Virus record (IMG/VR): IMGVR_UViG_3300044591_002232
Location: 124,001 to 188,000 of that record
Length of the DNA stretch: 64,000 bases
Reading direction: 5' to 3' (one strand)
Below the pieces are notes generated by a model that searched no databases, was not told where the DNA came from, and saw nothing but the letters and a program-made list of their open reading frames with translations. The translations under genes and the position numbers were made by a program. Shown here in pieces: positions 4,285-50,022 of the stretch (position 1 is the first letter of the stretch; every line of letters starts with the position of its first letter).

Positions 4285-4310
4285 ATAGTAGCAGTTCATT
4301 ATAAACAACC

Positions 4311-4460
4311 ATGGAAGAACTAATTAATGCCATTATTGAGGATGAATCTCCTTCTGCTATCAGCGATGCAATCAAAAATATTCTTTCTGTCAAGGCAGTA
4401 GAAAAAATTGATGAATACCGGCCAGAAGTTGCTGCTAGTATGTTTAACGTAAATGAGTGA
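4311..4460 (+). CDS. Small conserved head-region protein (49 aa, MEELINAIIEDESPSAISDAIK...)
   Basis: Read by eye; follows late promoter at 4281; resembles the small ORF found after gp20 in cyanomyoviruses. Confidence 0.7.
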   Translation: MEELINAIIEDESPSAISDAIKNILSVKAVEKIDEYRPEVAASMFNVNE

Positions 4461-5112: not shown

Positions 5113-6369
5113 ATGTCACACCTTTATGAACCATATAAACCTCAAGATGATGCTTTTGGTAGGGCAAGAGTTTCTGAGCCATTTACCCTAGGTGATTATA
5201 AACATCTTTATTCAATTGATCCAGATTTTATTGATGTTTATTCTGGAATCGGCGCCACATTGACTTTTAACGTCAACCAGGCAGCCGCGAATCTTCAATC
5301 TGGTATTTCTACTAATGGTTATACAATTCATCAGACAAAAAGATATCATCATTATATGCCAGGTAAATCTCAATTGATTTACTCCTCTTTTAACTTTGGA
5401 CAACCTCAACAAAATGTAATCAAGAGGACCGGTTATTTTGATGATAGGGACGGAATTTATTTTGAACAGGATCAAAATGGAAATCTTAATTTTGTAATTC
5501 GTTCTTTTGTTAATGCCGGTATTGGTAATTCGGAAAGAAGAATTCCACAATCTCAATGGAACAAAGATCAACTTGATGGAAGTGGCGTCTCTGGATTTGA
5601 TTTAGACATTACAAAAACTCAACTTTTCTTTACCGATTTTGAATGGCTTGGTGTTGGTAGAGTTCGTTGTGGATTTAGTCTTGATGGTAAGAATATTGTT
5701 GCACATGAATTTTATAATTCTAATAATGTTGATACCGTTTACATGTCAAATCCCAATCTCCCAGTAAGATGTGAAATTAGAAACACTGGAACTCAAGTTG
5801 GTGCTGGGGGGTCTTTTATCCAAATTTGCTCTACTGTGATGAGTGAGGGTGGTTATACAGAGGCTGGAAGAGAATTTTCTCATGCAACTTCTTTAAGATC
5901 TGTTGGTGTTGGATCAACAGTTCCTGTTCTGGCAATTAAACTTAAAAATTCTTTTAAAGGTTATCCAAATAGAGCTACGGTAAAATTAGAGGATATTTCA
6001 GTTTTTAGTGTTGGATCAAATATAAAGTATGAGGTAGTAAAAATTAATAGTGCCGTGGGTTTGAGTACAACCGGGACCTGGATTTCTGAACACCCCGAAT
6101 CTGTTGTTGAATACAACCAAACTGCAACCGGAGTTGGAACAACTCTATTTGAGGATTTTATGAGTGGATATGCTTCTGGTGACAGTCAAAATGTAAATAA
6201 ACCAGCCGCAACTTCTTCTAACATTCAATCTGGCCCCACATCAAAGAAAAATTTCTTGTCTCAGAATTATAATTCAACCAATTCTGAGATTTTTTCTGTA
6301 ATAGTTACCAATATTGGTTCTAATTCAACAAATGTTGGTGTTTCTTTGAGGTGGAAAGAGATTTATTGA
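5113..6369 (+). CDS. Hypothetical virion/structural protein, beta-sandwich rich
   Basis: 418 aa ORF, G/S/T rich, translationally coupled in late region. Confidence 0.6.
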   Translation: MSHLYEPYKPQDDAFGRARVSEPFTLGDYKHLYSIDPDFIDVYSGIGATLTFNVNQAAANLQSGISTNGYTIHQTKRYHHYMPGKSQLIYSSFNFGQPQQNVIKRTGYFDDRDGIYFEQDQNGNLNFVIRSFVNAGIGNSERRIPQSQWNKDQLDGSGVSGFDLDITKTQLFFTDFEWLGVGRVRCGFSLDGKNIVAHEFYNSNNVDTVYMSNPNLPVRCEIRNTGTQVGAGGSFIQICSTVMSEGGYTEAGREFSHATSLRSVGVGSTVPVLAIKLKNSFKGYPNRATVKLEDISVFSVGSNIKYEVVKINSAVGLSTTGTWISEHPESVVEYNQTATGVGTTLFEDFMSGYASGDSQNVNKPAATSSNIQSGPTSKKNFLSQNYNSTNSEIFSVIVTNIGSNSTNVGVSLRWKEIY

Positions 6370-6410
6370 CTAAATAGTTTTAATAAATAACTAAAGAAAC
6401 CCCGTTAAAA

Positions 6411-6746
6411 ATGTCGCTTCTTGATAAAAAATCCTCAGTAAAATTAAATTCTGGACAACTTGTTCAGGGAGTTGCTGTAGTTGATAGTGACGGAAATCAA
6501 GTTACTTCATTTGGGGGTAGTGGAGGTGGTTCTACAACTGTCGGGGTAGTAACAGTTTCTAATACCGTTTCTAATCCAGTTCCGGTTATTTCTGGATTAA
6601 ATATTCCAAACCACAATAGAGTATCCCTTGCATATTCGGGATCTAATTTAGTTGGTGTTGCATACAGTTTTAATAATGTCGGTGTTGCTACTTTAACTCT
6701 TTCTTATGATGGGAGTAATAACCTTATTTCGGTCGTTAGGAGCTGA
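6411..6746 (+). CDS. Hypothetical protein, G/S/V rich
   Basis: ORF track; preceded by CTAAATA near 6370. Confidence 0.55.
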   Translation: MSLLDKKSSVKLNSGQLVQGVAVVDSDGNQVTSFGGSGGGSTTVGVVTVSNTVSNPVPVISGLNIPNHNRVSLAYSGSNLVGVAYSFNNVGVATLTLSYDGSNNLISVVRS

Positions 6747-6751
6747 TTTTT

Positions 6752-7450
6752 ATGCAATATAAGTTCAACCCATTTACTGGAACCCTGGATGCGGCTGGCG
6801 GCGGCAACCCTGCTGGCAGTAGTGGCGACATTCAGCTAAACCTGGATGGCGCCTTCGGTGCTGTTTCCAGTTTTCGCTGGATTACTGGTGAATTGCAGGT
6901 TCCGGGTGACATCAAACTTGATGACGGCGGCGGCTTTACTACAACAATTCAGCAAGTAACGCCGACCAAGAACAACGTCATCTCATTCCCCGATCAGACG
7001 GGGACTGTGGCCTTGGTGGGCGGCTCTACTGGGCAGGTTCTCTACAACCTGAACGGTGCTCTTGCTGGCACTGACACTATCTTCAATGCCACGACTGGCA
7101 CCCGGTTCACGCTGCCATTCGGCTACGGGATCGGCGCTGGAGGCACGCAGACCCAGGCTACCAGCAAGAGCACTGGGGTGACGCTGGACACCCGCTGCGG
7201 GCAGGTAACGATGAATGCGGCTGAGCTGACAGCCAACACGGCGGTGTCGTTCACGCTCACCAACAGCCAGATCACGGCGACCGACCTGATCATCATCAAC
7301 CACGTTTCAGGCGGCACGACCGGGGCGTACATGTTCGGTGCCCGAGCGGCTGCTGGTTCGGCCACGATCACCGTGCGGAACGTGACTGCTGGGGCTCTGA
7401 GCGAAGCGGTTGTGATCGCTTTTGCAGTAGTAAAAGCCACTACTAACTGA
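6752..7450 (+). CDS. Tail fibre/adhesin-like protein; start of GC-rich island
   Basis: G/T/A-rich beta-structure sequence; base composition shifts to GC-rich shortly after the start codon. Confidence 0.55.
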   Translation: MQYKFNPFTGTLDAAGGGNPAGSSGDIQLNLDGAFGAVSSFRWITGELQVPGDIKLDDGGGFTTTIQQVTPTKNNVISFPDQTGTVALVGGSTGQVLYNLNGALAGTDTIFNATTGTRFTLPFGYGIGAGGTQTQATSKSTGVTLDTRCGQVTMNAAELTANTAVSFTLTNSQITATDLIIINHVSGGTTGAYMFGARAAAGSATITVRNVTAGALSEAVVIAFAVVKATTN

Positions 7451-7464
7451 GGAGATCACCACCC

Positions 7465-7869
7465 ATGGCTTCATTCACTGTCGAGATTCCCGATTATCTG
7501 CTTCCGGCCCTGGTGGCAGAGTTCAGTCTGGTGCAGGGCAAGGTGCCTGCGGCAACGCCTGAGGAGTATTTCAAGGCGAGCGTGGTGGAAATCATCCGCC
7601 AGCGTGCCGAGATCTACAAAGTTGGGCCGTACTTCGTCGGTGCGGTTGACCCGCAGTTCAATCAGGACGGGACACCGTATGGCTGGGCGCCGCCGCCTGA
7701 GCGGCCTGCGGCACTCACTGTCGGTCAGACATGGATTGATGGCAGCGGGCAGGAGTGGACGGTGGTGCAGGCCATTAACCCTGACGGCACGTTTGCTGCA
7801 GATGATCCTGAAACGCCCGAGCGCGAGTCTCTGGCCTGGGTGCAGACGGATGGAGGTGGCGACGGATGA
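7465..7869 (+). CDS. Hypothetical protein (GC-rich island)
   Basis: ORF with GAGGAG RBS upstream; overlaps next start. Confidence 0.6.
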   Translation: MASFTVEIPDYLLPALVAEFSLVQGKVPAATPEEYFKASVVEIIRQRAEIYKVGPYFVGAVDPQFNQDGTPYGWAPPPERPAALTVGQTWIDGSGQEWTVVQAINPDGTFAADDPETPERESLAWVQTDGGGDG

Positions 7870-8654
7870 CGTTGATATGGCGCCCAGGCTACATAACAAC
7901 ATTTGCTGATCCTGATGTTCAGTCGTATTTGACAAGGGTAGAGGAGGCCGATAATCAGGGATTGGAATACCCCGTGGCGGTGGCGATTGATGAGTTTATT
8001 AGGGGCTGCAAGGCTGATGGGATCTGGAGCGCTATCAAGGCGAGTTGCATCATGGCCGGCGCCCGCACGCTGGCCGGTGCGCTGGTGCCGCTGGTGGGGC
8101 CTGCGCCGACAAATATTGGTTTTGTGGCGGGGGATTACAACAGGAAGACGGGGTTGGTGGGGGGTGGCTCCGTTAAGGCGCTTAACAGCAATAGGGCTCG
8201 TAGTGCCGACCCGATCGACTCTTTCCACGCTTCCCTGTATTTAAGCACTACTGGCGGTAACGCTCTGTTTGGGTTGGCCAATGACGGCCAATTTGATCAA
8301 ATGCTTGCCGTTAATAGCAGCACGGGCACTTCTTTTAGGGGCAGAATTGTAGCTATTGACAACAGGGTAACTGGCTTTGTTGGGGCCAGCAATACTGCCG
8401 CTGCCTTAACGGCAAGAGCGAACGGCACCAATTCAACCAATACAGGCGCAATGTACGGGGCTTTTGCTAACTCAGGCAAATACTATGTATTTGCCCGAAA
8501 TACTGGAACAGGCGACGCTGATGGGGTCGTTAGTAGCGGCTCTCCTACTTTCAGCCGTCTCGCCTTCTACAGCATAGGCGAATCCCTAAACCTCGCCCTG
8601 CTGGATGCCCGCATCACCACCCTAATCAACAGATTCGCAGTCGTAATACCATGA
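7866..8654 (+). CDS. Hypothetical virion-like protein, paralog A
   Basis: Shares GCKADGIWSAIKASC..AGARTLAGALVPLVGPAPTN and RLAFYSIGESLNLALLDARITTLIN with 8651-9445. Confidence 0.7.
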   Translation: MTLIWRPGYITTFADPDVQSYLTRVEEADNQGLEYPVAVAIDEFIRGCKADGIWSAIKASCIMAGARTLAGALVPLVGPAPTNIGFVAGDYNRKTGLVGGGSVKALNSNRARSADPIDSFHASLYLSTTGGNALFGLANDGQFDQMLAVNSSTGTSFRGRIVAIDNRVTGFVGASNTAAALTARANGTNSTNTGAMYGAFANSGKYYVFARNTGTGDADGVVSSGSPTFSRLAFYSIGESLNLALLDARITTLINRFAVVIP

Positions 8655-9445
8655 GCCCAATTTACACTCCAGGAAAGTTAATACTTCGCCGGACGTATAT
8701 TGGCCTGGACGACCCTGACGCTGCGGCATACATCACAGCGGTCGAGATTGCAGATGGTCAGCCCTTGGAGATTGAGGTTCGGGTGGCAGTTCATTCGTTT
8801 GTAAAAGGCTGCAAGGCGGATGGCATCTGGAGCGCGATCAAAGCCTCCTGCATCCTTGCCGGCGCCCGCACACTGGCCGGTGCGTTGGTGCCGCTGGTGG
8901 GGCCTGCGCCGACGAATTTTAATTTCGTGGCTGGTGACTACAACCGCAAGACGGGGTTGGTGGGGAATGGGAGTACGAAGTATCTGGACAGCGGCAGGAA
9001 TAACAACGCTGATCCGCAAGATAGCAAGCATCTGGCAGTATTCAAATCAAGCAACGCAGGCAAGCTGGGGGGCCTCTTAGGCACTGCGTTGAACGCAAAT
9101 GGTACATCATGGATTTTTGAAGGTTTTAGTGGAGGCAGCGATACCTATCGAGTCAATACAAACCCTTCAATCATACTCTCCCTAGGATCTTATCCTGACA
9201 CGGGATTTATAGGCATTAACCGTTCGTCGTCGAGTAACTCAACGCGAAGGTATTCAGGGGCAACAATCTCTGATGCCAGCACCTCTCAAGCGCCATTAGC
9301 CGCAAATGCTCTGGTGTTTAGTGCCGCAGGCCAGCCAACCGACGCCCGCCTCGCCTTCTACTCCATCGGCGAATCCCTCAACCTCGCCCTGCTGGATGCC
9401 CGCATCACCACCCTAATCAACACGTTCGGAGCTGTTATCCCATGA
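8651..9445 (+). CDS. Hypothetical virion-like protein, paralog B
   Basis: Tandem paralog of 7866-8654; ATGA overlap. Confidence 0.7.
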   Translation: MSPIYTPGKLILRRTYIGLDDPDAAAYITAVEIADGQPLEIEVRVAVHSFVKGCKADGIWSAIKASCILAGARTLAGALVPLVGPAPTNFNFVAGDYNRKTGLVGNGSTKYLDSGRNNNADPQDSKHLAVFKSSNAGKLGGLLGTALNANGTSWIFEGFSGGSDTYRVNTNPSIILSLGSYPDTGFIGINRSSSSNSTRRYSGATISDASTSQAPLAANALVFSAAGQPTDARLAFYSIGESLNLALLDARITTLINTFGAVIP

Positions 9446-9515
9446 CCCATGTAATGAGCTATAGCAAACCAACCCCATTTTCCACTGCCTCTAACACTGC
9501 TGCGGAGGTAACACC

Positions 9516-10172
9516 ATGAGTTGGCTTATTACTGCCAAGCAGTACATTCCCGCCGTAATTGGCGAGCCATTCGGTGGCGGCTTCTTCGCTGGCTATATCA
9601 GCCACACTGCTGATGGCAACCCCACTCATGCGCTGATCGTGGCGCCTAGGGCTACTGGGGCGACGGGAACGGGTTATACGTTGACGACGCAGAGGCAGTG
9701 GAAGACAACAGACACAGCGACTGCAGGAGCGAACAGCGTATTTAATGGGGCAGCAAACACCGCTGCCATAGTGACGGCAGGCATCGCCGATCATCCTGCC
9801 GCGCAGTTCTGTGTTGGCTTAAGCATTGGTGGATTCACTGATTGGTACTTACCAGCAGTGGCTGAACTAAATATAGCTTATTTCAACCTCAAGCCAAACA
9901 CTAACTCAAACTTTACCGGTGCAGGATCTAACATATACGCCGTGCCAAGTCGCGGCAGTAATTTCACAGCAGGCAATCCGGCGCAAACGGCGCTAACAGC
10001 GTTTGTTAGCGGCGGGGAGCAATTCCAGTCGTCTGACCATTGGGCATCATCCGAAGCTAGTGCAACAAATGGCAATTACTATGGCTTCAACAGTGGGTTT
10101 CCAGGTAGCAGAGCAAAAACGACCTCAACCACGGCGGCGAACGTTCGCGCCTTCCGCCGCATCGCCCTCTAA
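9516..10172 (+). CDS. DUF1566/C-type-lectin-fold-like protein
   Basis: GGFTDWYLPAVAEL and C-terminal HWASSE...N...F..G....K....NVRAFRR pattern. Confidence 0.55.
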   Translation: MSWLITAKQYIPAVIGEPFGGGFFAGYISHTADGNPTHALIVAPRATGATGTGYTLTTQRQWKTTDTATAGANSVFNGAANTAAIVTAGIADHPAAQFCVGLSIGGFTDWYLPAVAELNIAYFNLKPNTNSNFTGAGSNIYAVPSRGSNFTAGNPAQTALTAFVSGGEQFQSSDHWASSEASATNGNYYGFNSGFPGSRAKTTSTTAANVRAFRRIAL

Positions 10173-11805: not shown

Positions 11806-12972
11806 ATGGCTCGCAAGCAACAACTAGATGAAATGGAAGCAAAGAATCCCCAGTCTAAGACTGCGGTGAATGCAAATGCCAAGCCAGGCGATCCAATGCC
11901 CAAACTCACCACTGGTATTCCTGATGGTCAAACAGGCAGCTGGGAAGATCTTGGTGGCCCAACTCCAGAAAATGCCAAGCCTGATGACGACAGCGCAAAA
12001 CTCAAGGATCCCGCTTCAAACATTAAGCGAGTTGCCGAGATTATTCGCGGTCGTAAAGGTTCACAAGAAGGTGATGTGGCAATGTCAAAAATGTCTCTTC
12101 CTGAAGAGGATGATCATGACGAAGAGGATCTCGTAACTGAGGAATCATGCGAAGATGATGAAGAAAAAGATGAAGATGAAGAAAAGCATGATAAGAAAAA
12201 GAAAAAAGAAGATGACGAAGATGAAGATGAAATGAAAGAAGACTTCGACATTGATAAAGATGTCGAGGCTCTTGTAGGTGGCGAAGATCTTTCCGAAGAA
12301 TTCAAAGAAAAGGCCAAGACCATCTTTGAGGCCGCACTTCGTTCTAAAGTCTCCGAGATCAAAGAATCTCTAGAAGAGAGCTATACCCAGGCTCTTCAAG
12401 AAGAAGTTCAGGCTATTGCCGAAGAACTACAGGAACGTGCTGATTCCTACCTAGAATATGTTGCAGACGAGTGGATGCATGAGAATCAGCTAGTAATCAC
12501 TCGCGGAATCAAGGAAGAACTCACCGAGTCATTCCTTGTCAATCTCAAGAATCTTTTTGAGCAACATTATGTGTCCATGCCTGATGAGAAATATGATGTT
12601 CTTGAGAACATGGTGACTAAACTAGATGAAATGGAAGATAAACTCAACGAGCAAATTGAGAAAAATATTCAACTTAGCAAGCGTCTCTGTGAGGCTGTTG
12701 CTGATGGAATCTTTGATGATGTTGCTGAGGGTCTAGCCGAAACTCAGAAAGAAAAGCTCGCTTCACTTGCCGAAAGTGTTGAGTTTGAAGGTGAAGATCT
12801 TTATCGTGAAAAACTAGAGACTCTACGGGAATCTTATTTCCCCGCGAATTATGTCTCTCCAATCGCTCACTCTGAAGTACTAACCGAAGATACCGAATTT
12901 GTTGCACCTGAGTCTTACTCAAATTCAATGGATCGTTATCTCAGAATGGCTTCAATGATAGCTAAAAATTGA
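11806..12972 (+). CDS. gp22: Prohead core scaffold protein
   Basis: Acidic coiled coil; EEFKEKAKTIFEAA, YLEYVADEWM; lies between gp21 and gp23. Confidence 0.92.
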   Translation: MARKQQLDEMEAKNPQSKTAVNANAKPGDPMPKLTTGIPDGQTGSWEDLGGPTPENAKPDDDSAKLKDPASNIKRVAEIIRGRKGSQEGDVAMSKMSLPEEDDHDEEDLVTEESCEDDEEKDEDEEKHDKKKKKEDDEDEDEMKEDFDIDKDVEALVGGEDLSEEFKEKAKTIFEAALRSKVSEIKESLEESYTQALQEEVQAIAEELQERADSYLEYVADEWMHENQLVITRGIKEELTESFLVNLKNLFEQHYVSMPDEKYDVLENMVTKLDEMEDKLNEQIEKNIQLSKRLCEAVADGIFDDVAEGLAETQKEKLASLAESVEFEGEDLYREKLETLRESYFPANYVSPIAHSEVLTEDTEFVAPESYSNSMDRYLRMASMIAKN

Positions 12973-13026
12973 TTTCAATATTTAAATCAAACCCAAACTT
13001 TTAAACTCTAAAGAGGTAAACGCAAA

Positions 13027-14436
13027 ATGCTTCAACTTAACGAAAGCCAATTGCAGGAAAAGTGGGCTCCGCTTCTGAACTTTGACGGCCTTGATCCCAT
13101 CAAGGATGCTCATCGCAGAAAGATCACCGCTATCCTGCTAGAAAACGCCGAACATGATCTTCGGGAAACCAATTCTTTCAACAATGGACTTCTTCTAGAA
13201 AGTCCTACTATTGCTAATGCCCCTGGTGCATCTGGTGGTTTTAGCGGCTCAGCCGATGCTGCTGGTCCAGTAGCCGGTTTTGACCCAATTCTAATCAGCA
13301 TGATTCGTCGTGCTATGCCTAATCTTGTGGCCTATGATCTGGCTGGTGTACAGCCCATGACTGGTCCTACTGGTCTAATCTTCGCCATGCGCTCTCGCTA
13401 TGAAGGCCAAAGTGGTGATGAGACCTTCTTCGATGAAGTAGACACCTCATTCTCTGCTCAAAACAGTGGTCGTAGCCTGACTGCCGGTATCACCTCTGCC
13501 ATCTCTGGTATGGGTACTACTGCTGGTCAACTTGGCACCAATCCTGGTCTACTTAACCCAACCGGTTCAGCCAATCAGGCTGCATATAACCTAGGTCAGG
13601 GTATGGTAACCGGTGATGCTGAGAATCTTGGCAATGGTGATAATAATCAGTTCAACGAAATGAGCTTCTCGATTGAGAAAGTTCTTGTTGAGGCTAAGAG
13701 CCGCGCTCTCCGGGCTCAGTACACTCTAGAAATGGCCCAGGATCTCAAGGCGATTCATGGTCTTTCTGCCGAAGCCGAGCTGGCTAACATTCTGTCTACC
13801 GAAATTCTTGCCGAAATTAACCGCGAGGTTATTCGTACCATTTATAAGGTAGCCGAACAAGGTGCAGCCGTAAACACTTCTACTCCTGGTATTTTTGACC
13901 TTGATATTGACTCCAACGGTCGTTGGTCAGTTGAGAAGTTTAAGGGTCTAATCTTCCAGATTGAGCGTGATGCAAACGCTATCGCCCAGCGTACTCGTAG
14001 AGGGAAGGGTAACGTAATCATGTGCTCTGCTGACGTAGCCTCCGCGCTAACCATGGCTGGTGTACTTGATTATACTCCTGCTCTAAATGCTAACCTAAAC
14101 GTAGACGATACTGGCAATACTTTTGCTGGCGTTCTTATGGGTAAGTACCGTGTATACATTGATCCTTATTCTGCCAACGTAAGTGCTAATCAGTATTATG
14201 TTGTTGGTTACAAGGGTTCTTCACCTTATGATGCGGGGATTTTCTATGCTCCATATTTGCCACTGCAAATGGTTCGTGCTGTAGATCCTAAGACTTTCCA
14301 GCCTGCTATCGGATTTAAGACTCGTTATGGCATGGTCGCAAACCCCTTCGCTGAGGGCTTGGATCAAGGCCTGGGCCGTCTGAAAATCAATAGCAACCGC
14401 TATTATCGTAGAGTTTCCATCCGAAACTTATCTTAA
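13027..14436 (+). CDS. gp23: Major capsid protein
   Basis: RRAMPNLVAYDLAGVQPMTGPTGLIFAMRSRY, AKSRALRAQYTLEMAQDLKAIHGL, FQPAIGFKTRYG. Confidence 0.98.
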   Translation: MLQLNESQLQEKWAPLLNFDGLDPIKDAHRRKITAILLENAEHDLRETNSFNNGLLLESPTIANAPGASGGFSGSADAAGPVAGFDPILISMIRRAMPNLVAYDLAGVQPMTGPTGLIFAMRSRYEGQSGDETFFDEVDTSFSAQNSGRSLTAGITSAISGMGTTAGQLGTNPGLLNPTGSANQAAYNLGQGMVTGDAENLGNGDNNQFNEMSFSIEKVLVEAKSRALRAQYTLEMAQDLKAIHGLSAEAELANILSTEILAEINREVIRTIYKVAEQGAAVNTSTPGIFDLDIDSNGRWSVEKFKGLIFQIERDANAIAQRTRRGKGNVIMCSADVASALTMAGVLDYTPALNANLNVDDTGNTFAGVLMGKYRVYIDPYSANVSANQYYVVGYKGSSPYDAGIFYAPYLPLQMVRAVDPKTFQPAIGFKTRYGMVANPFAEGLDQGLGRLKINSNRYYRRVSIRNLS

Positions 14437-41601: not shown

Positions 41602-42057
41602 ATGTCAGAAGATTTAATCAAAGTTGCTGTTCTAGAGCAACGAGTTCAAGACCTTAAAGAATTTGTTCTTAAGGTTGATGAAGCAATCGAAAAAATAAGC
41701 CAGGTAAATGTCAGCCTGACAAAAATGATTGCGGTTCATGAAGAAAAAATTGACACTAGAGAAAGAGCCGAAAAGAGTCTTAATGAAAAAATAGACACAA
41801 TCTATACACAAATGCAGGAAGATCATAAAAATGTTCTTACTGAAATAAAGACACTAAGTACTAATATTGATAAGCGTCTAACTGATGTAGAAAAAGGTCA
41901 AAATAAAATTAATCTAAAAATCGCTGTGGTTCTAGGCATCGGTGCATTTCTTGGATTTGTCATTCAGAACTCTGGGTTCTTTGTTAAGATCCTGGCACAT
42001 CCACAGCACTTGACAACTCCTGTTCCTCATGCTACAATGGCCCCAGTCCAGAAGTGA
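41602..42057 (+). CDS. Coiled-coil protein with C-terminal hydrophobic segment
   Basis: VAVLEQ..KIDEAIEKI..MIAVHEEKI; IAVVLGIGAFLGFVI. Confidence 0.65.
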   Translation: MSEDLIKVAVLEQRVQDLKEFVLKVDEAIEKISQVNVSLTKMIAVHEEKIDTRERAEKSLNEKIDTIYTQMQEDHKNVLTEIKTLSTNIDKRLTDVEKGQNKINLKIAVVLGIGAFLGFVIQNSGFFVKILAHPQHLTTPVPHATMAPVQK

Positions 42058-42063
42058 TGTGAA

Positions 42064-43065
42064 TTGGATTTTATTGATGAAACCTTTATTGAACGTGTTG
42101 CACCTAGACTACAAAACTTCAAGAAAGTAAAACCTAAACTTTATAATTTTCGATGTCCCTATTGTGGCGACTCTTCTAGATCTAAAAAAAAGGCCAGAGG
42201 ATATCTCTATCCGGTAGATAATAACACGAATTATAAGTGCCATAACTGCGGAATCAGTATTTCTCTTAATAACTTTTTAAAAGAAATAGACCCACCTCTT
42301 TATAAAGAGTTTACAATTGAAAAATATAAGGCTGGCTTTACTGGAAAGAATTTTGTTGTTGAGGCTCCTAAATTTGAAATATCAAAACCAAATTTTAGAG
42401 AAAGAGTTGGGCTTCCGGCTGCATCTAAAAATGATGTTGCAAGACAATATCTCTTAAAAAGAAAAATTGATCCGGATAAGTTTTATTATACCGAAAACTT
42501 CAAACAATGGATCAATGAAATTACTTATGAGCCAAATCTTTTAGAAGAGCCTAGAATAGTAATACCTTTGTACTATAATAAGAAATTAATAGGAGTACAA
42601 GGCCGAGCCCTTAATTCTTCTTCGGTAAAATACATCACAATCATGTTTGATGAACATTCTCCGAAGATTTATAATTATGATAATGTTAATAAAAAAGAAT
42701 TTGTTTATGTCCTAGAAGGACCTTTTGATTCTTACTTTATTAAAAATTCGGTCGCCATGTGCGGGGCCGATTTAGATCTAAAAAGTCTAAATATCTATTA
42801 CCCGGTATATGTTTATGACAACGAACCTCGCAACCAAGAAATACATTCTAGAATGTCAAAGGTAATCAAAGAGGGTTATTCAATAGTCATATGGCCAGAT
42901 ACAATAAAACAAAAAGACGTTAATGATGCAGTTCTTGCGGGAATTGATGTTGAGGACGTTTTGTCCAAAAATATTTACAAAGACCTAGAAGCACAACTTA
43001 AATTCAACTATTGGAAGAAAAATGAGCGAAGAAATCAAAGTCAAAAAACGCAATGGCACTATTGA
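42064..43065 (+). CDS. gp61: DNA primase
   Basis: FRCPYCGDS..KCHNCG zinc finger, VLEGPFDS, YDNEPRN, KDVND. Confidence 0.93.
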   Translation: MDFIDETFIERVAPRLQNFKKVKPKLYNFRCPYCGDSSRSKKKARGYLYPVDNNTNYKCHNCGISISLNNFLKEIDPPLYKEFTIEKYKAGFTGKNFVVEAPKFEISKPNFRERVGLPAASKNDVARQYLLKRKIDPDKFYYTENFKQWINEITYEPNLLEEPRIVIPLYYNKKLIGVQGRALNSSSVKYITIMFDEHSPKIYNYDNVNKKEFVYVLEGPFDSYFIKNSVAMCGADLDLKSLNIYYPVYVYDNEPRNQEIHSRMSKVIKEGYSIVIWPDTIKQKDVNDAVLAGIDVEDVLSKNIYKDLEAQLKFNYWKKNERRNQSQKTQWHY

Positions 43066-44074
43066 GCCATTGCAACTTTCTAAACTCCATGAAATGGTCG
43101 CCTGCGCCTGTGAGGGCCTTTCTGGAGTTTCAGTATCTCAGGTAGAAATGGCATCTGGGATTCAATTTTATGATGGTATTTCAACCAATGAAATTCAAGA
43201 AATCTTGATCAAGGCCGCATCTGATCTTATTTCTCTAGATAATCCTAATTATCAATACGTGGCCGCAAGACTTCTTCTGTTTTCAATTCGGAAGAAGATC
43301 TATGGTGGTCGAATTGATCTACCTCATCTGAGTGAGCACATTAAAAAGTGTGTAGACCTTGGTGTTTATGATGCCTCCATTTATGAGAACTATTCTGAAG
43401 AAGAACTAGATCTGGTCAATTCTTTTATTGACCATGACCGGGATCTTTTGTTTACTTATGCTGGCCTTCGGCAGGTAGTTGATAAGTATCTTGTGCAAGA
43501 CCGAGTGGATAATGTTCTTTATGAGACTCCTCAGTTTATGTACTTGGTGATTGCACTTACTGGTTTTGCAAAGTATCCTAAAGACAAAAGGATGTCTTAT
43601 GTAAAGCGTTATTATGATGCAATTAGCAAGCATAAAATTAATATTCCTACACCAATTCTTGCAGGAGTCAGAACCAAACTGAGGCAATATAGTAGTTGTG
43701 TTCTTGTTGATGTAGGAGATAGTCTTTCTAGTATCGAGGCTAGTGACGCTGCGGTTTTTAGATATGTTGCACAGCGAGCCGGTCTAGGTATTAATGCTGG
43801 GCGTATTAGGGGGATAAACAGTAAAATTCGTGGCGGTGAAGTTGTCCACACTGGAGTTATTCCTTATCTGAAAAAGTTTGAGGCCACTGTAAAAAGTTGT
43901 ACGCAAAATGGAATTCGCGGGGGTTGTTTTGATTCTGATTCTGAAGTTTTATTAATTGATAGTGTAGAAATTGATGGTAAAATTTATACACTCGATGATG
44001 AAATTGATGGGGTTAAAGTGTCTGAAATTATAAATAGTCATAACGGAAATAAAACCGTTATGTTATTGGAGTAA
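43022..44074 (+). CDS. nrdA: NrdA fragment 1 (301-aa extein with ATP cone plus 49-aa split-intein N-half)
   Basis: VKKRNG ATP cone, PTPILAG, SSCVL, TQNGIRGG then CFDSDSEV. Confidence 0.93.
   Translation: MSEEIKVKKRNGTIEPLQLSKLHEMVACACEGLSGVSVSQVEMASGIQFYDGISTNEIQEILIKAASDLISLDNPNYQYVAARLLLFSIRKKIYGGRIDLPHLSEHIKKCVDLGVYDASIYENYSEEELDLVNSFIDHDRDLLFTYAGLRQVVDKYLVQDRVDNVLYETPQFMYLVIALTGFAKYPKDKRMSYVKRYYDAISKHKINIPTPILAGVRTKLRQYSSCVLVDVGDSLSSIEASDAAVFRYVAQRAGLGINAGRIRGINSKIRGGEVVHTGVIPYLKKFEATVKSCTQNGIRGGCFDSDSEVLLIDSVEIDGKIYTLDDEIDGVKVSEIINSHNGNKTVMLLE
43925..44071 (+). mobile_element. Split intein 1, N-half (49 aa, atypically short)
   Basis: Begins with Cys (CFDSDSEVLL) exactly where NrdA homology stops. 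Confidence 0.75.
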
Positions 44075-44077
44075 AAA

Positions 44078-45073
44078 ATGGAAGACTTAATTTGGAACGA
44101 AGAAACGATTAGAAAAAGTAGATCTCCTTTTAGTATCTACTTTTATCTTAAAAAAACCAATGGAAATCAAGAGGAAGCTCAGAAACTTTACAGGGAATTT
44201 TTGGATAAAAATGTACCATTTAAAGAAAAACATAATAGACCCAATGCAAAAGAGTATTGGATGACCCGAGGATTTAGCGAAGAAGAAGCCATAATAAAGG
44301 TTAGGGAATTTCAATCTAAGCCTTTAGATTTGGAAATTTATATTGAGAAGTACGGAGAGGAGGAGGGTCTAGCTAAGTTTAATAAAAGAAAAGAAAATCT
44401 TCAAAATAGATTTGATGTTGAGATTAAAAATGTTCAACAAAAATTAAATTGCAGTTATGATGAGGCATATGAATATTGTTGCCAAAGAAGGAGAAGTTGT
44501 TCTCCTAGAACAGTAGATTATTGGTTAAATAGGGGCCATTCATTGGAGGATGCAAAAAAATTAGTATCAAAATTTTCAAAAGAAAGTAGTCCAAGAAGCA
44601 TATATTATTGGATCAGAATTGGTTATACCGAAGAAGAAGCAAAATTAAAAGTTTCTGAATATCAAGATAACAATTCTATAAGTGCCATAATGAAACGATA
44701 TGGGTGCGATAAATTTGAGGCTCTTGATATACAAGAATCTATACTTGAAAAAACCAAAAAAACTAATATTCAAAATAAAAAGAGTGTCGAAATTGGTGAT
44801 GAATATGCTTTTTTCGTTTATAAAAAGGAGGTTCAACGCGAAACAAAAAAAACTCTAAGATTGTATAAAGATACTTTTGTCAAAACTGATAAAAGTCAAA
44901 CTCTAGATCATATGTATAGCGTTTTTTGGGGTTTTTATAATGATGTTCCTCCAAAAATAATTGGATCTATTTATAATCTTAGATATGTTTCTCAATCAGA
45001 AAACTCAAAAAAACAATCTAATTGCTCAATAACACTCGAAACCTTATTAGAAAAGTACGAAAATGGAAATTAA
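44078..45073 (+). CDS. Free-standing HNH-like homing endonuclease inside fractured nrdA
   Basis: YW..RG.S.EEA repeats; LDHMYS..GF.N.VPP.IIGS..NL...N..K...CSIT. Confidence 0.7.
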   Translation: MEDLIWNEETIRKSRSPFSIYFYLKKTNGNQEEAQKLYREFLDKNVPFKEKHNRPNAKEYWMTRGFSEEEAIIKVREFQSKPLDLEIYIEKYGEEEGLAKFNKRKENLQNRFDVEIKNVQQKLNCSYDEAYEYCCQRRRSCSPRTVDYWLNRGHSLEDAKKLVSKFSKESSPRSIYYWIRIGYTEEEAKLKVSEYQDNNSISAIMKRYGCDKFEALDIQESILEKTKKTNIQNKKSVEIGDEYAFFVYKKEVQRETKKTLRLYKDTFVKTDKSQTLDHMYSVFWGFYNDVPPKIIGSIYNLRYVSQSENSKKQSNCSITLETLLEKYENGN

Positions 45074-45464
45074 AATTAATCTGGCAAAGAAAAGAATTTC
45101 AGATGTCTCCGTTGGAGATAGAGTCTATTGTTATAACGAATTTGATGATAAATTTTGTGTTGGAAATGTAACAAATTTATTTACTCCAACAATAAAAAAA
45201 GAATATCAGGAAGAAATTCTTATTGGTGGGGAGGCTGTTTATACTTCTAGTATTCATCCTTTTTATGATGGTCTTAATAAGAAATGGGTGGACTCACGGG
45301 AAATCGACAACATTTTTGGATTAGGGGTTTATGGTGATTATATTGACATTTTAAATGATCATAATTATAAATCTAATTGTGATAAAACTTTTTATGATTT
45401 TACTGTTGATAAATATCACAACTATTTTGTCGGCAAAAATGGAAAATTTACTTTAACTCATAAT
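45063..45464 (+). mobile_element. Split intein 1, C-half (134 aa)
   Basis: ISDVSVGDRV, block B TSSIHPF, block F YDFTVDKYHNYF, block G THN followed by Ser. Confidence 0.8.
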
Positions 45465-47219
45465 TCATCCACAGTATTTTTTCCTGTGTGGCACCAAGAA
45501 ATCGAGGATATTATTGTATTAAAAAATAATAAAGGCTCAGAAGATAATCGTGTTCGCAACCTTGATTATGCCATTCAGCTGAGTAAAATTTTTTATGAGC
45601 GATTTATTCAGGATGGAGAAATTACTCTGTTTTCACCTCATAATGTTCCAGGTCTTTATGAAAAATTTGGTTTAGATGGATTTGATGAACTTTATGTAAA
45701 GTATGAAAATGATCCTTCTATTCCAAAGAAAAAAGTAAAGGCCCAAGAGCTTATTATTGATATCTTGAAAGAGCGTGCAGAGACTGGTCGGATTTATCTT
45801 ATGAATATCGATCATTGTAATTCACATGGTCCTTTTAAGGATCAGATTACAATGAGTAACCTTTGTGTTGCTGGTGATACTAAAATTGAAATTGAAATTT
45901 TTGTTAAAGATATTAATGATTACAGGTGGGCAACAATTGACATAAAAAATTTAAATGATTTTATTAACAATCCAGAGTATGGGAATCTGAGAGTTCTTTC
46001 TTACGACCTTAATACTAGAACGAATGTAACCCAATCTATTACTGCATTTGCCGAAACTTTACCAAAAGCCCAGGTAATGAAACTTAGGCTCAGTAATAAT
46101 GTCGAAATCGTTGTTACCCCAGATCATAAGGTTTATACCAAAAATCGAAGCTATGTTATGGCCAAGGATCTGACTGCTTATGATGAATTAGTTTCACCAA
46201 AATTGAATGAATCTCTAAAAGTTGTTTCAACCGAATATCTTGAGGAAGAAATTCCTGTTTATGATATTACTGTAGAAGGAACTCATAATTTCTTTGCAAA
46301 TGGAGTTCTTGTTTCCAATTGTATGGAAATCCTTCTAAAAACTACCCCGATTGAACATATTGATGATGTAGATGGATCTATTGCTCTTTGTATTCTTTCT
46401 TGTGTTAATGTAGGTACAATTAAGTCTGATAAAGAGCTTGAAGAATGTTGTGATCTTTCTGTTAGATTCTTAGATGAGCTAATTGACCATCAGGAATATC
46501 CTGTTAAGGCCGCCGAATTAACAACCAAGGCTAGTCGTTCTCTAGGTATTGGTTATATTGGTCTGGCTCATTATCTTGCTAAATTGGGATTTAAATATTC
46601 TGATCCTGGTGCATGGGGAGCTGTCCATAAACTAACTGAAAGTTTTCAGTATTATCTTCTAAAATCATCCAATAATCTAGCAAAAGAAAAGGGTGCATGT
46701 GACAACTTTAAACACACTAAGTATTCTGATGGAATTCTTCCAATTGATACTTATAAGAAAGAAGTTGATGAAATTTGTGATGTAGAATATACTCATGACT
46801 GGGAACAACTTCGTCAGGATATTTTAGAACATGGTCTTCGCCATACTACACTCTCCTCTCAACCCCCAACGGAGAGTTGCCTTTTTTGGGAACATAAGAT
46901 TAAAACTTCTACCGGGGAAATGGACTTCCATCAAATTGCCGAATATGGTGGACTTGATTGGAGAGGGATTGAGGAAAATGATGCAATCGGCTGGTATGAC
47001 CTGAACAAGACTATTACAGTTGAAACTCAAGATGGATACAAAGAAGTTGATAAACTTTATTTCAATGGAAATAAAGAAGTTGCGACTATTACCTTTGAAA
47101 ATGGTAAAGTGATTAAGTGTACACCCAATCATAAGTTTTTGGTTCGACTAGAAAATGGTTCCACTATCTGGAAGCGAGTTTATGAATTGAATGAAGATGA
47201 CGAAGTAGTTGAGATTTAA
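45063..47219 (+). CDS. nrdA: NrdA fragment 2 (IntC1 - extein - cis intein - extein - IntN2)
   Basis: LTHN|SSTVFFPVWHQEIEDI; ERAETGRIY; SNL|C...SN|CMEIL; RSLGIGYIGLA; QPPTES|CLF. Confidence 0.93.
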   Translation: MEIKINLAKKRISDVSVGDRVYCYNEFDDKFCVGNVTNLFTPTIKKEYQEEILIGGEAVYTSSIHPFYDGLNKKWVDSREIDNIFGLGVYGDYIDILNDHNYKSNCDKTFYDFTVDKYHNYFVGKNGKFTLTHNSSTVFFPVWHQEIEDIIVLKNNKGSEDNRVRNLDYAIQLSKIFYERFIQDGEITLFSPHNVPGLYEKFGLDGFDELYVKYENDPSIPKKKVKAQELIIDILKERAETGRIYLMNIDHCNSHGPFKDQITMSNLCVAGDTKIEIEIFVKDINDYRWATIDIKNLNDFINNPEYGNLRVLSYDLNTRTNVTQSITAFAETLPKAQVMKLRLSNNVEIVVTPDHKVYTKNRSYVMAKDLTAYDELVSPKLNESLKVVSTEYLEEEIPVYDITVEGTHNFFANGVLVSNCMEILLKTTPIEHIDDVDGSIALCILSCVNVGTIKSDKELEECCDLSVRFLDELIDHQEYPVKAAELTTKASRSLGIGYIGLAHYLAKLGFKYSDPGAWGAVHKLTESFQYYLLKSSNNLAKEKGACDNFKHTKYSDGILPIDTYKKEVDEICDVEYTHDWEQLRQDILEHGLRHTTLSSQPPTESCLFWEHKIKTSTGEMDFHQIAEYGGLDWRGIEENDAIGWYDLNKTITVETQDGYKEVDKLYFNGNKEVATITFENGKVIKCTPNHKFLVRLENGSTIWKRVYELNEDDEVVEI
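45864..46319 (+). mobile_element. Cis mini-intein (152 aa) at the NrdA active-site SNL|CxE
   Basis: CVAGDT, VTPDHKVY, YDITVEGTHNFFANGVLVSN followed by Cys. Confidence 0.9.
46878..47216 (+). mobile_element. Split intein 2, N-half (113 aa)
   Basis: CLFWEHKI, CTPNHKF, ELNEDDEV then stop. Confidence 0.88.
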
Positions 47220-47270
47220 TGCGTTGATGCCTTCACTTTACTAAATAATAATAGTTTAGTAAAGGCATCA

Positions 47271-48347
47271 ATGAAGACAAAACTAGTTACTTTAATGAAA
47301 ACCAGATTTAACATTTTAACCCCGCACGAACTCTTAACAGAATTGAAACAAATCGGAAAAATTGACTATAGGTCATTAAGAAAGCCATTTGAAGAAACCC
47401 CGCCAGAGAGATTTGATCTTGAGGTTATTAAAAAATATGTTAGTTATGTTTTTCTATACCCAAATAAAAGAAAACTTCAATATGAACCAGAATATTGGAT
47501 GTACAGAAGGAACCTTTCTTATAATGAAGCTGTTGAGCTTATTAAACAAAATAAAATAGATAATGGTCAAACAAAAGAGGCTTTTATAAAAAGATATGGA
47601 GAAGAAAAAGGATTAGAAATGTATGAAAAATTTAGATTAACCAGCGCATATCCGTCTTCCGATGAATGGTTCAAAGAAAAATATGGGGAAACATGGGAAG
47701 AAGAAAAAGCATATGCTATGAAAAGAAAATCTAAACGAACTGTAGAATATTGGACCCATCGTGGATATAGTTTAGAAGAAGCTAAAATTGAAGTTAGTAA
47801 ATATCAAAGATCAACCTCTGGTGTTCATAGAGAATATTATAGACAAAGAGGATATAGTGAAGATGAAATTGCTGTTATTTTTAATGAAATAGATAAGAAA
47901 AAACCCAATCATAAAAGAAACACCAATTATCTCCGTGAAAAATACCCCGATACTTGGCAAGAGATTTATCTTGAAGTATCTGAAAAATATAGAAAAAGAA
48001 TGGAGGAGTTAGGAGTATGGATTGAAAATGACATTGCTGACGACTTTAAAAAATATAAAACGCTTGTAATTAGATATACTAATCAGAGTTTATTATTTTA
48101 TGGAGAATTGATTGAGAATTTAGAATTGAGATCTAAAGACTTTCAATTAGATCACAAATATTCAATTAAAATGGGATTTATAAATAATATTCCAGCTGAA
48201 ATAATTGGATCAATAGTAAATTTAGAGATACTTCCAGCGAGTATTAATGGCTCAAAACAACATAAATGTTCTATTACTAAAACCCACCTTTTAACCGAGT
48301 ACAAAAAATTTAAGGAGACACATGAAAGTAAAAACGATTCAATTTGA
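47271..48347 (+). CDS. Second free-standing HNH-like homing endonuclease inside nrdA
   Basis: YW..RGYSLEEA repeats; LDHKYS..GF.NNIPAEIIGS..NL...N.SK..KCSIT; late promoter 47241. Confidence 0.72.
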   Translation: MKTKLVTLMKTRFNILTPHELLTELKQIGKIDYRSLRKPFEETPPERFDLEVIKKYVSYVFLYPNKRKLQYEPEYWMYRRNLSYNEAVELIKQNKIDNGQTKEAFIKRYGEEKGLEMYEKFRLTSAYPSSDEWFKEKYGETWEEEKAYAMKRKSKRTVEYWTHRGYSLEEAKIEVSKYQRSTSGVHREYYRQRGYSEDEIAVIFNEIDKKKPNHKRNTNYLREKYPDTWQEIYLEVSEKYRKRMEELGVWIENDIADDFKKYKTLVIRYTNQSLLFYGELIENLELRSKDFQLDHKYSIKMGFINNIPAEIIGSIVNLEILPASINGSKQHKCSITKTHLLTEYKKFKETHESKNDSI

Positions 48348-48426
48348 AGGAGAAATTCTTCCAACTTACGACATTGAAGTTCCAGAAGTTCATCATTACA
48401 ACTGTGAAGGGCTAGTATCTCACAAC
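48322..48426 (+). mobile_element. Split intein 2, C-half (35 aa)
   Basis: Blocks F and G ending SHN with +1 Ser. Confidence 0.88.
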
Positions 48427-48861
48427 AGTTCGGTTTCGTGTAATGCAACAAACGGAGTAGAACCTCCTAGAGATTATCTTTCCATTAAACAATCTAAAAA
48501 GGGAACTCTCAAACAAATTGTACCCCAGTATAATAAACTAAAGAACAATTATACACTTCTTTGGGACATGCCTTCAAATGAAGGATATATTAATTGTGTT
48601 TCTGTTATGCAAAAGTTCTTTGACCAGGGAATTAGTGTAAATGGTAGCTATAATCCCCAGAATTATCCAAATAATGAAGTGCCAATCAGTGTTATAGTCA
48701 ATGACGTTCTTTCACTATACAAATATGGTGCAAAGACTGCATATTATCATAACACATATGATGGCAAAACTGATGATGTTTCTGCCGAAGAAATTAAAAA
48801 TAATGATTTAATTTCCGAAATCTTATCATCAGAAGAAGAATGTATCGCATGTAACGTTTAA
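48322..48861 (+). CDS. nrdA: NrdA fragment 3 (35-aa IntC2 plus 144-aa C-terminal extein)
   Basis: YDIEVPEVHHYNCEGLVSHN|SSVSCNATNGVEPPR, DQGIS, KTAYY, C-terminal CIAC redox pair. Confidence 0.92.
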   Translation: MKVKTIQFEGEILPTYDIEVPEVHHYNCEGLVSHNSSVSCNATNGVEPPRDYLSIKQSKKGTLKQIVPQYNKLKNNYTLLWDMPSNEGYINCVSVMQKFFDQGISVNGSYNPQNYPNNEVPISVIVNDVLSLYKYGAKTAYYHNTYDGKTDDVSAEEIKNNDLISEILSSEEECIACNV

Positions 48862-48873
48862 TCTAGGAAATTT

Positions 48874-50022
48874 ATGTCTAAAGTAAAAGGAATGACAGTT
48901 TTTAATACAGAAGAAATTAACACTAAAAAGCAAAAAATGTTTTTTAGTGCTCCATTGGGGATCCAACGATATGATGAGTATAAATACCCAATTTTTGAAA
49001 AACTCACACAACAGCAGCTCAGTTTCTTTTGGCGTCCAGAAGAAATAAATCTTCAAAAAGATAGGGCAGATTATCAGACTCTTCGCTCAGAGCAAAAACA
49101 CATTTATACTTCTAATTTAAAGTATCAGATTATGCTTGATTCTGTTCAGGGTCGAGGAACTTCAATTGCTTTTCTGCCATATTGTTCTTTACCAGAACTT
49201 GAATCATGTATAGAAGCCTGGGGATTCATGGAAATGATCCATAGTCGATCATATACTTATATTATAAAAAATATCTATGCTAACCCATCTGAAATATTTG
49301 ATACTATTATTGGTGATGAGAGAATTTTAGAAAGAGCCAAGAGTATTACTGATAATTACGATGAATATATTCAACATGCTCAACAATACTCTTCTTCAAA
49401 TCTTTGGCAATTTAATAATGAGGGTGTAGATTTAGGTAAAAATGAGCTTTATGAGGTAAAGAGAAAACTTTATCGAGCCATAATGGCAGTGAATATCCTA
49501 GAAGGAATTCGCTTTTATGTTTCCTTTGCTTGTTCTTTTGCCTTTGGTGAGCTGAAGTTAATGGAAGGAAGTGCGAAGATTATTTCGCTAATTAGCCGCG
49601 ATGAAGCGTGTCATTTAAATATAACCCAGAATATTCTTTCAAAATGGAAATCAGGCGACGATCCTGATATGATTAAAATTGCAAAAGAAGAAGAGCAATG
49701 GGTTTATAAGACATTTGAAGAAGCAGTTAATCAAGAAAAAAGATGGGCCGAATATATTTTTAAAGACGGCTCACTTATAGGGTTAAACTCCGCTCTTCTT
49801 TGTCAATATGTTGAGTGGGTTTGTAATAGACGTATGAAGGCTATTGGTTTTAAACCTCTTTATGATATTCCGGCCAATAATAATCCTCTTCCATGGACGG
49901 ATAACTGGCTCAGTTCAAAGGGGGTGCAGGTTGCACCTCAAGAGGTCCAGATTACTTCTTATCTAGTAGGGGGTCTTAATCAGGACATTAAACCAGATAG
50001 TTTCGCCAACTTCAAACTTTGA
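48874..50022 (+). CDS. nrdB: Ribonucleotide reductase class Ia beta subunit
   Basis: FFWRPEEI, DSVQGRG, EMIHSRSY, LEGIRFYVSF, RDEACH. Confidence 0.96.
   Translation: MSKVKGMTVFNTEEINTKKQKMFFSAPLGIQRYDEYKYPIFEKLTQQQLSFFWRPEEINLQKDRADYQTLRSEQKHIYTSNLKYQIMLDSVQGRGTSIAFLPYCSLPELESCIEAWGFMEMIHSRSYTYIIKNIYANPSEIFDTIIGDERILERAKSITDNYDEYIQHAQQYSSSNLWQFNNEGVDLGKNELYEVKRKLYRAIMAVNILEGIRFYVSFACSFAFGELKLMEGSAKIISLISRDEACHLNITQNILSKWKSGDDPDMIKIAKEEEQWVYKTFEEAVNQEKRWAEYIFKDGSLIGLNSALLCQYVEWVCNRRMKAIGFKPLYDIPANNNPLPWTDNWLSSKGVQVAPQEVQITSYLVGGLNQDIKPDSFANFKL

Follow-up and report, generated by a model that had tools for sequence, protein, structure and literature searches.

Fractured genes have been known since 2009, when Dassa, London, Stoddard, Schueler-Furman, and Pietrokovski (PMC2677866) described a set including NrdA-1 to NrdA-7, NrdJ-1, gp41-1, and IMPDH-1. 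In these phage DNA-metabolism genes, an N-extein with the N-terminal intein half (IntN), a short gap, a free-standing endonuclease gene, and the C-terminal intein half (IntC) with the C-extein follow one another on one strand, and the two intein halves carry opposite local charges. Natural atypical split inteins are likewise known. AceL-TerL (25/104 amino acids [aa], IntN/IntC), GOS-TerL (37/115), VidaL (IntN of 16 aa), and PolB16 OarG (15/168) combine a short IntN holding block A only with a long IntC holding blocks B, F, and G, and originate from phages or metagenomes (PMC11766414, PMC10189870). Here, we analyze nrdA, the gene of a class Ia ribonucleotide reductase (RNR), in a stretch of 64,000 nucleotides (nt) of lake-water phage DNA (positions 124,001 to 188,000 of IMG/VR record IMGVR_UViG_3300044591_002232; this whole stretch is called the window below). 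The reading that we favor, to which we assign a probability of about 0.8, is that this gene is doubly fractured and that NrdA is made in three pieces and rebuilt by two unrelated split inteins.

Five consecutive open reading frames (ORFs) occupy positions 43022-48861 on the plus strand of the window. ORFs 1, 3, and 5 encode class Ia NrdA pieces, which show the Pfam domains ATP-cone, Ribonuc_red_lgN, and Ribonuc_red_lgC in the correct order and match the R1 structures of E. coli and its relatives at E ~1e-101. In a near-identical phage (L002), nrdA is one ORF of 941 aa, and this allele served as a reference for the following segments.

43022..43924, + strand: NrdA N-extein (aa 1-301: ATP-cone, all-alpha domain, start of the barrel), from Pfam and the L002 allele.
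43925..44071, + strand: IntN1, 49 aa, Cys1, block A, acidic, from translation and the family motif.
44078..45073, + strand: HE1, a free-standing homing-endonuclease-like ORF of 331 aa, from the ORF and its C-terminal motif.
45063..45464, + strand: IntC1, 134 aa, blocks B/F/G, HN end before Ser+1.
45465..45863, + strand: NrdA extein segment 2, 133 aa, SNL end before the radical cysteine.
45864..46319, + strand: contiguous mini-intein, 152 aa, at the thiyl-radical Cys site (SNL/C...VSN/CMEI; here and below, a slash within a sequence motif marks a splice junction).
46320..46877, + strand: NrdA extein segment 3, 186 aa, PPTES end.
46878..47216, + strand: IntN2, 113 aa, Cys1, blocks A and B, canonical split point.
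47222..47273, + strand: RNA hairpin between the IntN2 stop and HE2, from folding energy compared with shuffled sequences.
47271..48347, + strand: HE2, a paralog of HE1, 358 aa.
48322..48426, + strand: IntC2, 35 aa, blocks F and G, HN end before Ser+1.
48427..48861, + strand: NrdA C-extein, 144 aa.
48874..50022, + strand: NrdB small subunit (Pfam Ribonuc_red_sm, E=7.6e-58), the functional partner of the reassembled NrdA.

When the four extein segments of the window were joined, the resulting 764 aa aligned to L002 with one gap, which is L002's own 177-aa intein at the radical cysteine. Both split-intein sites are empty in L002 (IRGG/SSTIFF and PPTES/SSVSC). Since the joined exteins thus align gap-free to the L002 extein, the split-intein boundaries are exact, and the L002 junctions imply that both split inteins use Cys1 and Ser+1. 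The N-extein shares 300 of its 301 residues with the uninterrupted allele and differs by a single K/R exchange. The half-intein sizes given in an earlier note on this DNA (49, 134, 113, and 35 aa for IntN1, IntC1, IntN2, and IntC2) were thereby confirmed to the base by translation; the 152-aa mini-intein in the middle piece and the 331- and 358-aa ORFs in the breaks go beyond what that note had observed. Excision of the insertions restores an L002-like protein in frame, and metagenome contigs lack precisely the cassettes. IntN1, IntN2, and the mini-intein all begin with the cysteine nucleophile of class 1 inteins, and class 1 motifs are found both in IntC1 (TSSIH, YDFTV..H, THN/S) and in IntN2/IntC2 (TPNH, YDIEV..HH, SHN/S). 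The HINT domains exceed the Pfam thresholds (PT-HINT, E=1.5e-12; Intein_splicing, E=1.3e-25), and AlphaFold models (predicted local distance difference test [pLDDT] 96 and 91) match solved inteins at Z 15-20.

The locus shares the gene order of the described fractured genes, an order that was also found in L081, L083, L084, L086, and L096, all nrdA loci with relatives of intein 1. It differs from them in several respects. The NrdA loci from the Global Ocean Sampling data were fractured once, at the radical-Cys site, whereas nrdA is fractured twice here, at two other sites, and the radical-Cys site holds a contiguous mini-intein. One of the two splits is atypical. The intervening genes of the earlier loci encode GIY-YIG or Vsr-like/EDxHD endonucleases, while those of this locus belong to an unannotated family, probably of HNH type. 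Furthermore, the gaps are only 3 nt and 51 nt long here, and the IntC starts overlap the endonuclease genes.

The two cassettes, each comprising IntN, endonuclease ORF, and IntC, are independent mobile units. Contigs from lake run X14 skip exactly 43925-45489, and the allele without the cassette has greater depth there than the contigs in which it is present. In lake runs X17 and X9, contigs skip exactly 46873/46878-48433, and X17 still carries cassette 1. Cassette 1 is present in an otherwise unsplit gene in L081, L083, and L084, and occurs in L085 together with a different split intein, associated with a GIY-YIG gene, at the radical-Cys site. The window and the empty L002 allele differ at 71 nucleotides in 2295 nt of extein, almost all of them within ~350 nt or less of the three insertion sites. 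The differences cluster at 43600-44000, 45465-45863, 46580-46877, and 48427-48460, one run of them adjoining site 3, and are almost absent elsewhere; the clustering at the insertion sites is the pattern expected of co-conversion during homing. The picture that we propose is that nrdA was invaded three times by mobile elements, two of them fractured-gene cassettes. The gene would now give rise to three polypeptides, N-extein-IntN1, IntC1-extein-(mini-intein)-extein-IntN2, and IntC2-C-extein. With two split inteins and one contiguous intein, maturation of NrdA would take two protein trans-splicing events, independent of each other, and a single cis-splicing event, each predicted to restore the exact uninterrupted sequence.

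Block positions bear out that intein 1 is atypical and intein 2 canonical. The split of intein 1 lies N-terminal to block B, and IntC1 carries a TxxH motif in block B (H65), YDFTV..H in block F, and a terminal HN followed by Ser. When IntC1 was searched against 1.84 billion representative proteins, eight NrdA pieces (representative clusters at 50% identity) with a long IntC at the same site were recovered, with IntCs of 131-141 aa that are 32-67% identical, begin with the consensus M.IKIN.K.KKI..V.VGD.V, and share the invariant residues S62, H65, D112, H133, and N134. In L081, L083, L084, and L086, the N piece, an endonuclease ORF, and the C piece follow each other in this order. The IntN halves of the family are 41-56 aa long, vary in their last residues, and share the motif C....S.V.(I/V)(I/V)(D/E)SVEIDG..Y.L.D.I.G..V, in which V8, S13, D17, and G18 are invariant. 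IntN1 itself has a conserved core of ~41 aa and a variable tail. Its NrdA context, Cys1, the HN/S end, and the empty-site allele indicate that intein 1 probably functions as an intein, and its sequence places it in the PT-HINT/BIL (bacterial intein-like) family: IntC1 scores 48.4 bits against Pfam PF07591 (gathering cut-off 27.7), and most of the 333 IntC1 relatives found are contiguous PT-HINT/BIL-type domains in long bacterial proteins. The search of a 5.8-billion-protein set with the 49-aa IntN1 returned only its own cluster, and a degenerate DNA pattern of the IntN motif found in IMG/VR the same phage lineage in five samples, one false positive, and nothing else.

The earlier note had called IntN1 strongly acidic, and with 7 Asp and 5 Glu against 3 Lys its net charge is indeed -9. 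The N-terminal arm of IntC1 (MEIKINLAKKRI) is basic (+3), and the IntN1 arm carries a local charge of -7. Charge complementarity was observed in all six family members examined, with -4 to -8 in IntN residues 6-30 and +3 to +5 in IntC residues 1-12. The acidity of IntN1 is thus accounted for by the opposite charges of the IntN and IntC arms in the family, which fit the electrostatic steering described for split inteins (PMC2677866).

Two relatives of cassette 1 have further peculiarities. The NrdA encoded at L085 483-3865 likewise comes in three pieces: it has an IntC1-type start and is broken again at the radical-Cys site by another split intein, with a GIY-YIG gene lying in that break. In L086, a 67%-identical relative with cassette 1, the middle nrdA piece stops early (...ETGQAIRC, then stop; locus positions 4001-5804), and the next nrdA ORF overlaps the truncated piece without an intein or endonuclease between them; this early end may reflect a frameshift or another kind of break.

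Comparison with the known atypical split inteins, which the earlier note had proposed, revealed the same layout of short IntN and long IntC but a separate lineage. Intein 1 resides in NrdA and uses Cys1/Ser+1 chemistry, with splicing predicted. It gave no sequence match to the TerL, VidaL, or PolB16 atypical inteins, and structurally the IntC1 model is closer to BIL domains and DnaB inteins (Z 16-19; the nearest solved structure, a Clostridium BIL domain, Z 18.7) than to VidaL (Z 13.0), so that common descent with these atypical inteins is not indicated. Its IntN, with a core of ~41 aa, exceeds those of the known natural cases (15-37 aa) in length, which reflects the probable position of the split at the end of a hairpin insertion specific to the family, as set out below. 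The biotechnological interest that had been attributed to IntN1 is moderate.

Insight into the origin of this split came from Campylobacter phage IBB_35, which has a contiguous 169-aa homolog of intein 1 at the same RGG/S site. This homolog starts with CHSP.SEVLVVDSIIVDG, followed ~20 residues on by LKKKKIEDVIPGDYV; it has the N-terminal motif C.S..SEVLVVDS..VDG and the basic KKKKIEDV arm in common with intein 1 and belongs to the family of IntN1 and IntC1, but it is contiguous and has no endonuclease gene. Three metagenomic copies (P0152-P0154) are 91-96% identical to it, and no relatives of the IBB_35 intein were found in IMG/VR. In a sister lineage on a Campylobacter-phage-like contig (L096/P0155), an intein 95% identical to that of IBB_35 carries a gene of the HE1/HE2 endonuclease family between residues 36 and 37. 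The N piece of this lineage ends in ...NPNFDFTQ plus six extra residues and a stop, and at L096 867-3101 the endonuclease ORF runs in frame, without a stop, into LITVVLKKKKIEDV, the IntC-NrdA piece, which raises the possibility that the product is an endonuclease-IntC fusion protein. The IBB_35 and L096 forms represent the states before and after the birth of a split intein. Since such a contiguous and invaded pair is at hand, the split of intein 1 arose independently of the other atypical inteins.

In an AlphaFold model of the contiguous homolog (pLDDT 90.8; the N-terminal 40 residues in blocks of 83-96), residues 7-16 in intein numbering form a strand of 10 residues, which is followed by a turn at the invariant DG and a short strand (19-21). 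A helix (23-29) and a coil (30-38) come next, and one unbroken strand (39-45) then passes into the conserved IED helix. The model aligns with solved inteins from residue 1 to the last (Z 17-20), leaving ~35-40 residues over. As strand 39-45 has only seven residues before the IED helix, it cannot comprise beta2, a turn, and beta3. The alignment of IntN sequences puts the split in the coil at the end of the insertion, in the numbering of the contiguous homolog. For a second AlphaFold job, the IntN fragments were left out of the alignment; MAFFT had placed them under the canonical IEDIxVGD motif. The models suggest that intein 1 has the canonical HINT architecture, but with an extended beta2/beta3 hairpin that an insertion caps, and the strand pairing behind this interpretation, taken from secondary structure and chain connectivity, is probable. 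We envision a PT-HINT/BIL-like family with an insertion of ~25-30 residues at the tip of the hairpin, into which the endonuclease gene would have entered. The insertion would then be part of IntN1, after Cys1, beta1, and an extended acidic beta2 arm, and IntC1 would begin with an extended basic beta3 arm and contain all the rest, including blocks B, F, and G. Topologically, this split would correspond to the S1 site of engineered atypical split inteins. Like it, the Ssp DnaX, DnaB, and GyrB S1 inteins are split at the beta2/beta3 hairpin (PMC3443213, PMC3620165), but their IntNs have 11-13 aa and no insertion.

A neighboring nrdA site (VHS/CSQGG) is occupied in Acinetobacter phage KARL-1 (MH713599; L094 1731-5450) by an intein that is split after 12 residues (CLTPDTKVEILV), with a 299-aa ORF in the break, and a contiguous form of this type of nrdA intein is found in Shewanella phage Thanatos-2 (L095). 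The shortest characterized natural IntN has 15 aa (PMC10189870); the KARL-1 IntN, if active, would be shorter.

Intein 2 is a class 1 intein unrelated to intein 1. Its split falls between blocks B and F, the canonical position, which leaves blocks A and B in IntN2 and F and G in IntC2; at the sequence level, it weakly matches the DnaB and gp41-1 inteins. IntN2-type ends were found in 25 protein clusters (67-94% identity), all stopping at the same position. Of these, 21 lack intein 1, being mostly NrdA N pieces without a site-1 intein, and four start with an IntC1-type half. The sequence AAGGAG lies 5 nt upstream of the IntC2 ATG. The mini-intein occupies the radical-cysteine site SNL/C, the classical RNR intein site. 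It is absent from the 99%-identical L001, which has both split inteins, and is represented in L002 by the 177-aa variant. Thus, all three intein sites are polymorphic among near-identical phages.

The ORFs in the two breaks, HE1 and HE2, are paralogs (33% identity, E=1e-28), and members of their family were found in the breaks of L081, L082, L083, L084, L086, and L096. Common to the family are repeated SPR..YW..RGYS.EEA modules and a C-terminal domain with an invariant LDH...NL...N..K motif, D277, H278, N300, and N309 being invariant in seven homologs. Sequence searches of Pfam and PDB with HE1 and HE2 gave no significant match, including none to GIY-YIG or Vsr-like (EDxHD) endonucleases, and PHROGs offered nothing beyond families of unknown function. 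Among language-model neighbors, the Atlas feature score to an HNH cluster was 0.92, and 8 of the 10 best family-bearing matches were HNH proteins; Pfam HNH_4 matched one family member at E=0.12 only. From these motifs and neighbors, HE1 and HE2 are reasonably likely to be HNH-like homing endonucleases.

Only 3 nt lie between the N-piece stop and the HE1 start, and the 3' end of HE1 shares 11 nt with the beginning of IntC1. HE2 is separated from the IntN2 stop by 51 nt, and its 3' end shares 26 nt with the beginning of IntC2. The hairpin at 47222-47273 (dG -24.6 kcal/mol, z -5.5, a stability reached by none of 200 shuffles) holds the HE2 start codon in its 3' arm. Translational control is known for phage endonuclease genes, and the hairpin at the HE2 start resembles it; it may act as a translational brake on HE2. 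In 42500-49500, Rfam recognized neither a group I intron nor any other RNA family. The 3-nt gap and the overlaps of the IntC halves with the endonuclease genes leave an intron no space, and the Rfam search gave no sign of one.

The middle polypeptide was correctly described in the earlier note as IntC1-extein-IntN2, a layout that cyclises proteins when the halves are cognate, and this raised the question of whether the opposite split geometries are a functional design, in which block B, shared by IntC1 and IntN2, keeps these halves from folding together, blocks cyclisation, and enforces ordered ligation. The geometry is real, and the same combination in a middle piece recurs in at least four further protein clusters (P0167, P0174, P0179, and P0180). 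However, either split type is constant within its intein family and is also found where the other intein is missing, and in L085 the partner of the atypical intein 1 is a split intein other than intein 2, inserted elsewhere in the gene. Nothing requires ordered ligation, so that the ordered three-piece ligation that had been seen as a feature of the pair finds no support. According to published work, the large S1-type IntC of Ssp DnaX trans-splices with IntN peptides of other inteins, and an IntN that forms part of a near-complete intein can still serve as the splicing partner of a large S1-type IntC; a duplicated block B alone does not prevent assembly. That IntN1 plus IntC2 would lack the whole middle of the HINT domain is true, but trivial. 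We therefore regard such a design, including a block to self-cyclisation by opposite geometry, as quite unlikely. The two inteins are nevertheless very probably orthogonal, as the earlier note had supposed, though not because of their geometry. Their alignable parts are ~30% identical, and their first 16 residues are unrelated. IntC2 has a net charge of -4, so that an IntN1/IntC2 cross-pair would be like-charged; charge is uninformative on the IntN2/IntC1 cross-pair. The canonical-geometry split inteins gp41-1, NrdJ-1, and IMPDH-1 are mutually orthogonal (PMC11766414), and orthogonality among split inteins of the same geometry is thus well documented. Sequence divergence explains the orthogonality better than geometry: the pairs would not cross-react, being divergent and charge-matched only to their cognates, and no anti-cyclisation design would be needed.

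Several observations weigh against the three-piece reading or parts of it. The placement of the split is extrapolated, via AlphaFold, from a homolog that is 26-32% identical, and the HNH assignment draws on motif and language-model similarity in the face of negative Pfam and PDB sequence searches. AlphaFold modeling of IntC1 alone (pLDDT 96.2) puts its first residues into the beta2 slot, and a profile comparison weakly aligns IntN1 to canonical positions 1-47. The last two fit a picture of overlap, in which IntC1 would be a complete HINT domain minus canonical residues 1-5 and residues 6-47 of IntN1 a paralogous second N-terminal module. Consistent with it, the isolated IntC1 model aligns to residues 6 to the end of nearly every solved intein, a hidden Markov model of contiguous PT-HINT homologs puts IntC1 residue 3 at position 8, hhalign sets the IntN family on canonical positions 1-47 (P=0.0014), and MAFFT repeatedly sets IDSVEIDGKIY under canonical IEDIxVGDxVx. 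The profile scores are weak, however (7.2 bits, with four of five IntN sequences unaligned), and the IntN family shows no similarity to the N terminus of the IntC family (hhalign P=0.29). The contiguous homolog has both segments in one chain. In its AlphaFold model, beta2 is present once and not twice, as a long strand, and an excursion connects it to an unbroken beta3 strand, in which too few residues precede the IED helix for beta2, turn, and beta3. Once this homolog had been found and modeled, we downgraded the overlap to an unlikely explanation. Nor do we see nrdA as a degenerating pseudogene overrun by selfish elements, whose pieces are not spliced into an active enzyme. The interrupted nrdA genes of the Campylobacter phages CPt10 and IBB_35 were interpreted as decaying in this way (PMC3653736), and the premature end of the L086 middle piece would agree with it. 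Against it, the exteins are intact and nearly identical to the uninterrupted allele, the splicing residues of all three inteins are present and are kept in the split family down to ~32% identity across many phage lineages, and nrdB downstream is intact, which makes decay very improbable.

The fold-back of the first strand in the isolated IntC1 model may be either an artefact or a real placeholder. It is tempting to speculate, although we consider it doubtful, that free IntC1 cages itself, its basic strand (residues 2-5) lying in the empty beta2 groove until it is displaced by the acidic IntN1 arm. If true, this would be a natural strand-displacement assembly that keeps a large, nearly complete IntC soluble, suppresses premature C-cleavage, and excludes noncognate N-halves, such as IntN2 on the same chain.

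The genome is T4-like, with gp23 capsid and scaffold genes at 11806-14436. Megablast of the locus against GenBank phages returned no match, and the identical IntN1-bearing nrdA N piece is present on further IMG/VR contigs of up to 250 kb. Promoter-like and terminator-like sites did not exceed chance level. At 41602-43065 of the window, adjacent ORFs of 151 and 333 aa correspond to the N- and C-terminal parts of phrog_451 (primase-related) and may together stand for a protein that other genomes encode as one chain; L086 has the same two ORFs. In addition, window positions 6000-10000 form an island of 50-54% G+C in a genome of ~35% G+C, and the ORFs of this island (6752-10172) have no Pfam match except a weak one to Lcl_C.

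In engineered tandem trans-splicing with CfaDnaE and SspDnaB-M86 (PMC7210297), a canonical and an S1-type split intein likewise ligate three pieces, although the middle piece carries two short halves there and two long ones (134 and 113 aa) here. No described case of natural tandem trans-splicing of this kind was found in the literature searched. What appears to be new in this locus is a gene fractured twice by splits of different geometry, a family of atypically split inteins of independent origin with contiguous and invaded forms both at hand, a split that the models place in a hairpin insertion with charged arms, and the endonuclease family associated with such cassettes.

The nrdA locus would thus be an instance of natural tandem protein trans-splicing, in which an enzyme of essential type is predicted to be assembled from three gene products by two split inteins and one cis-splicing intein. 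It provides candidate orthogonal pairs and, with the charged hairpin arms, design rules for protein engineering, for which the 12-aa IntN of KARL-1 might be more useful in practice than the 49-aa IntN1. Moreover, the locus defines an unannotated endonuclease family tied to fractured-gene cassettes. The contiguous, ancestor-like forms and the invaded forms of intein 1 together offer a direct view of the birth of a split intein and of the tolerance of the beta2/beta3 hairpin.

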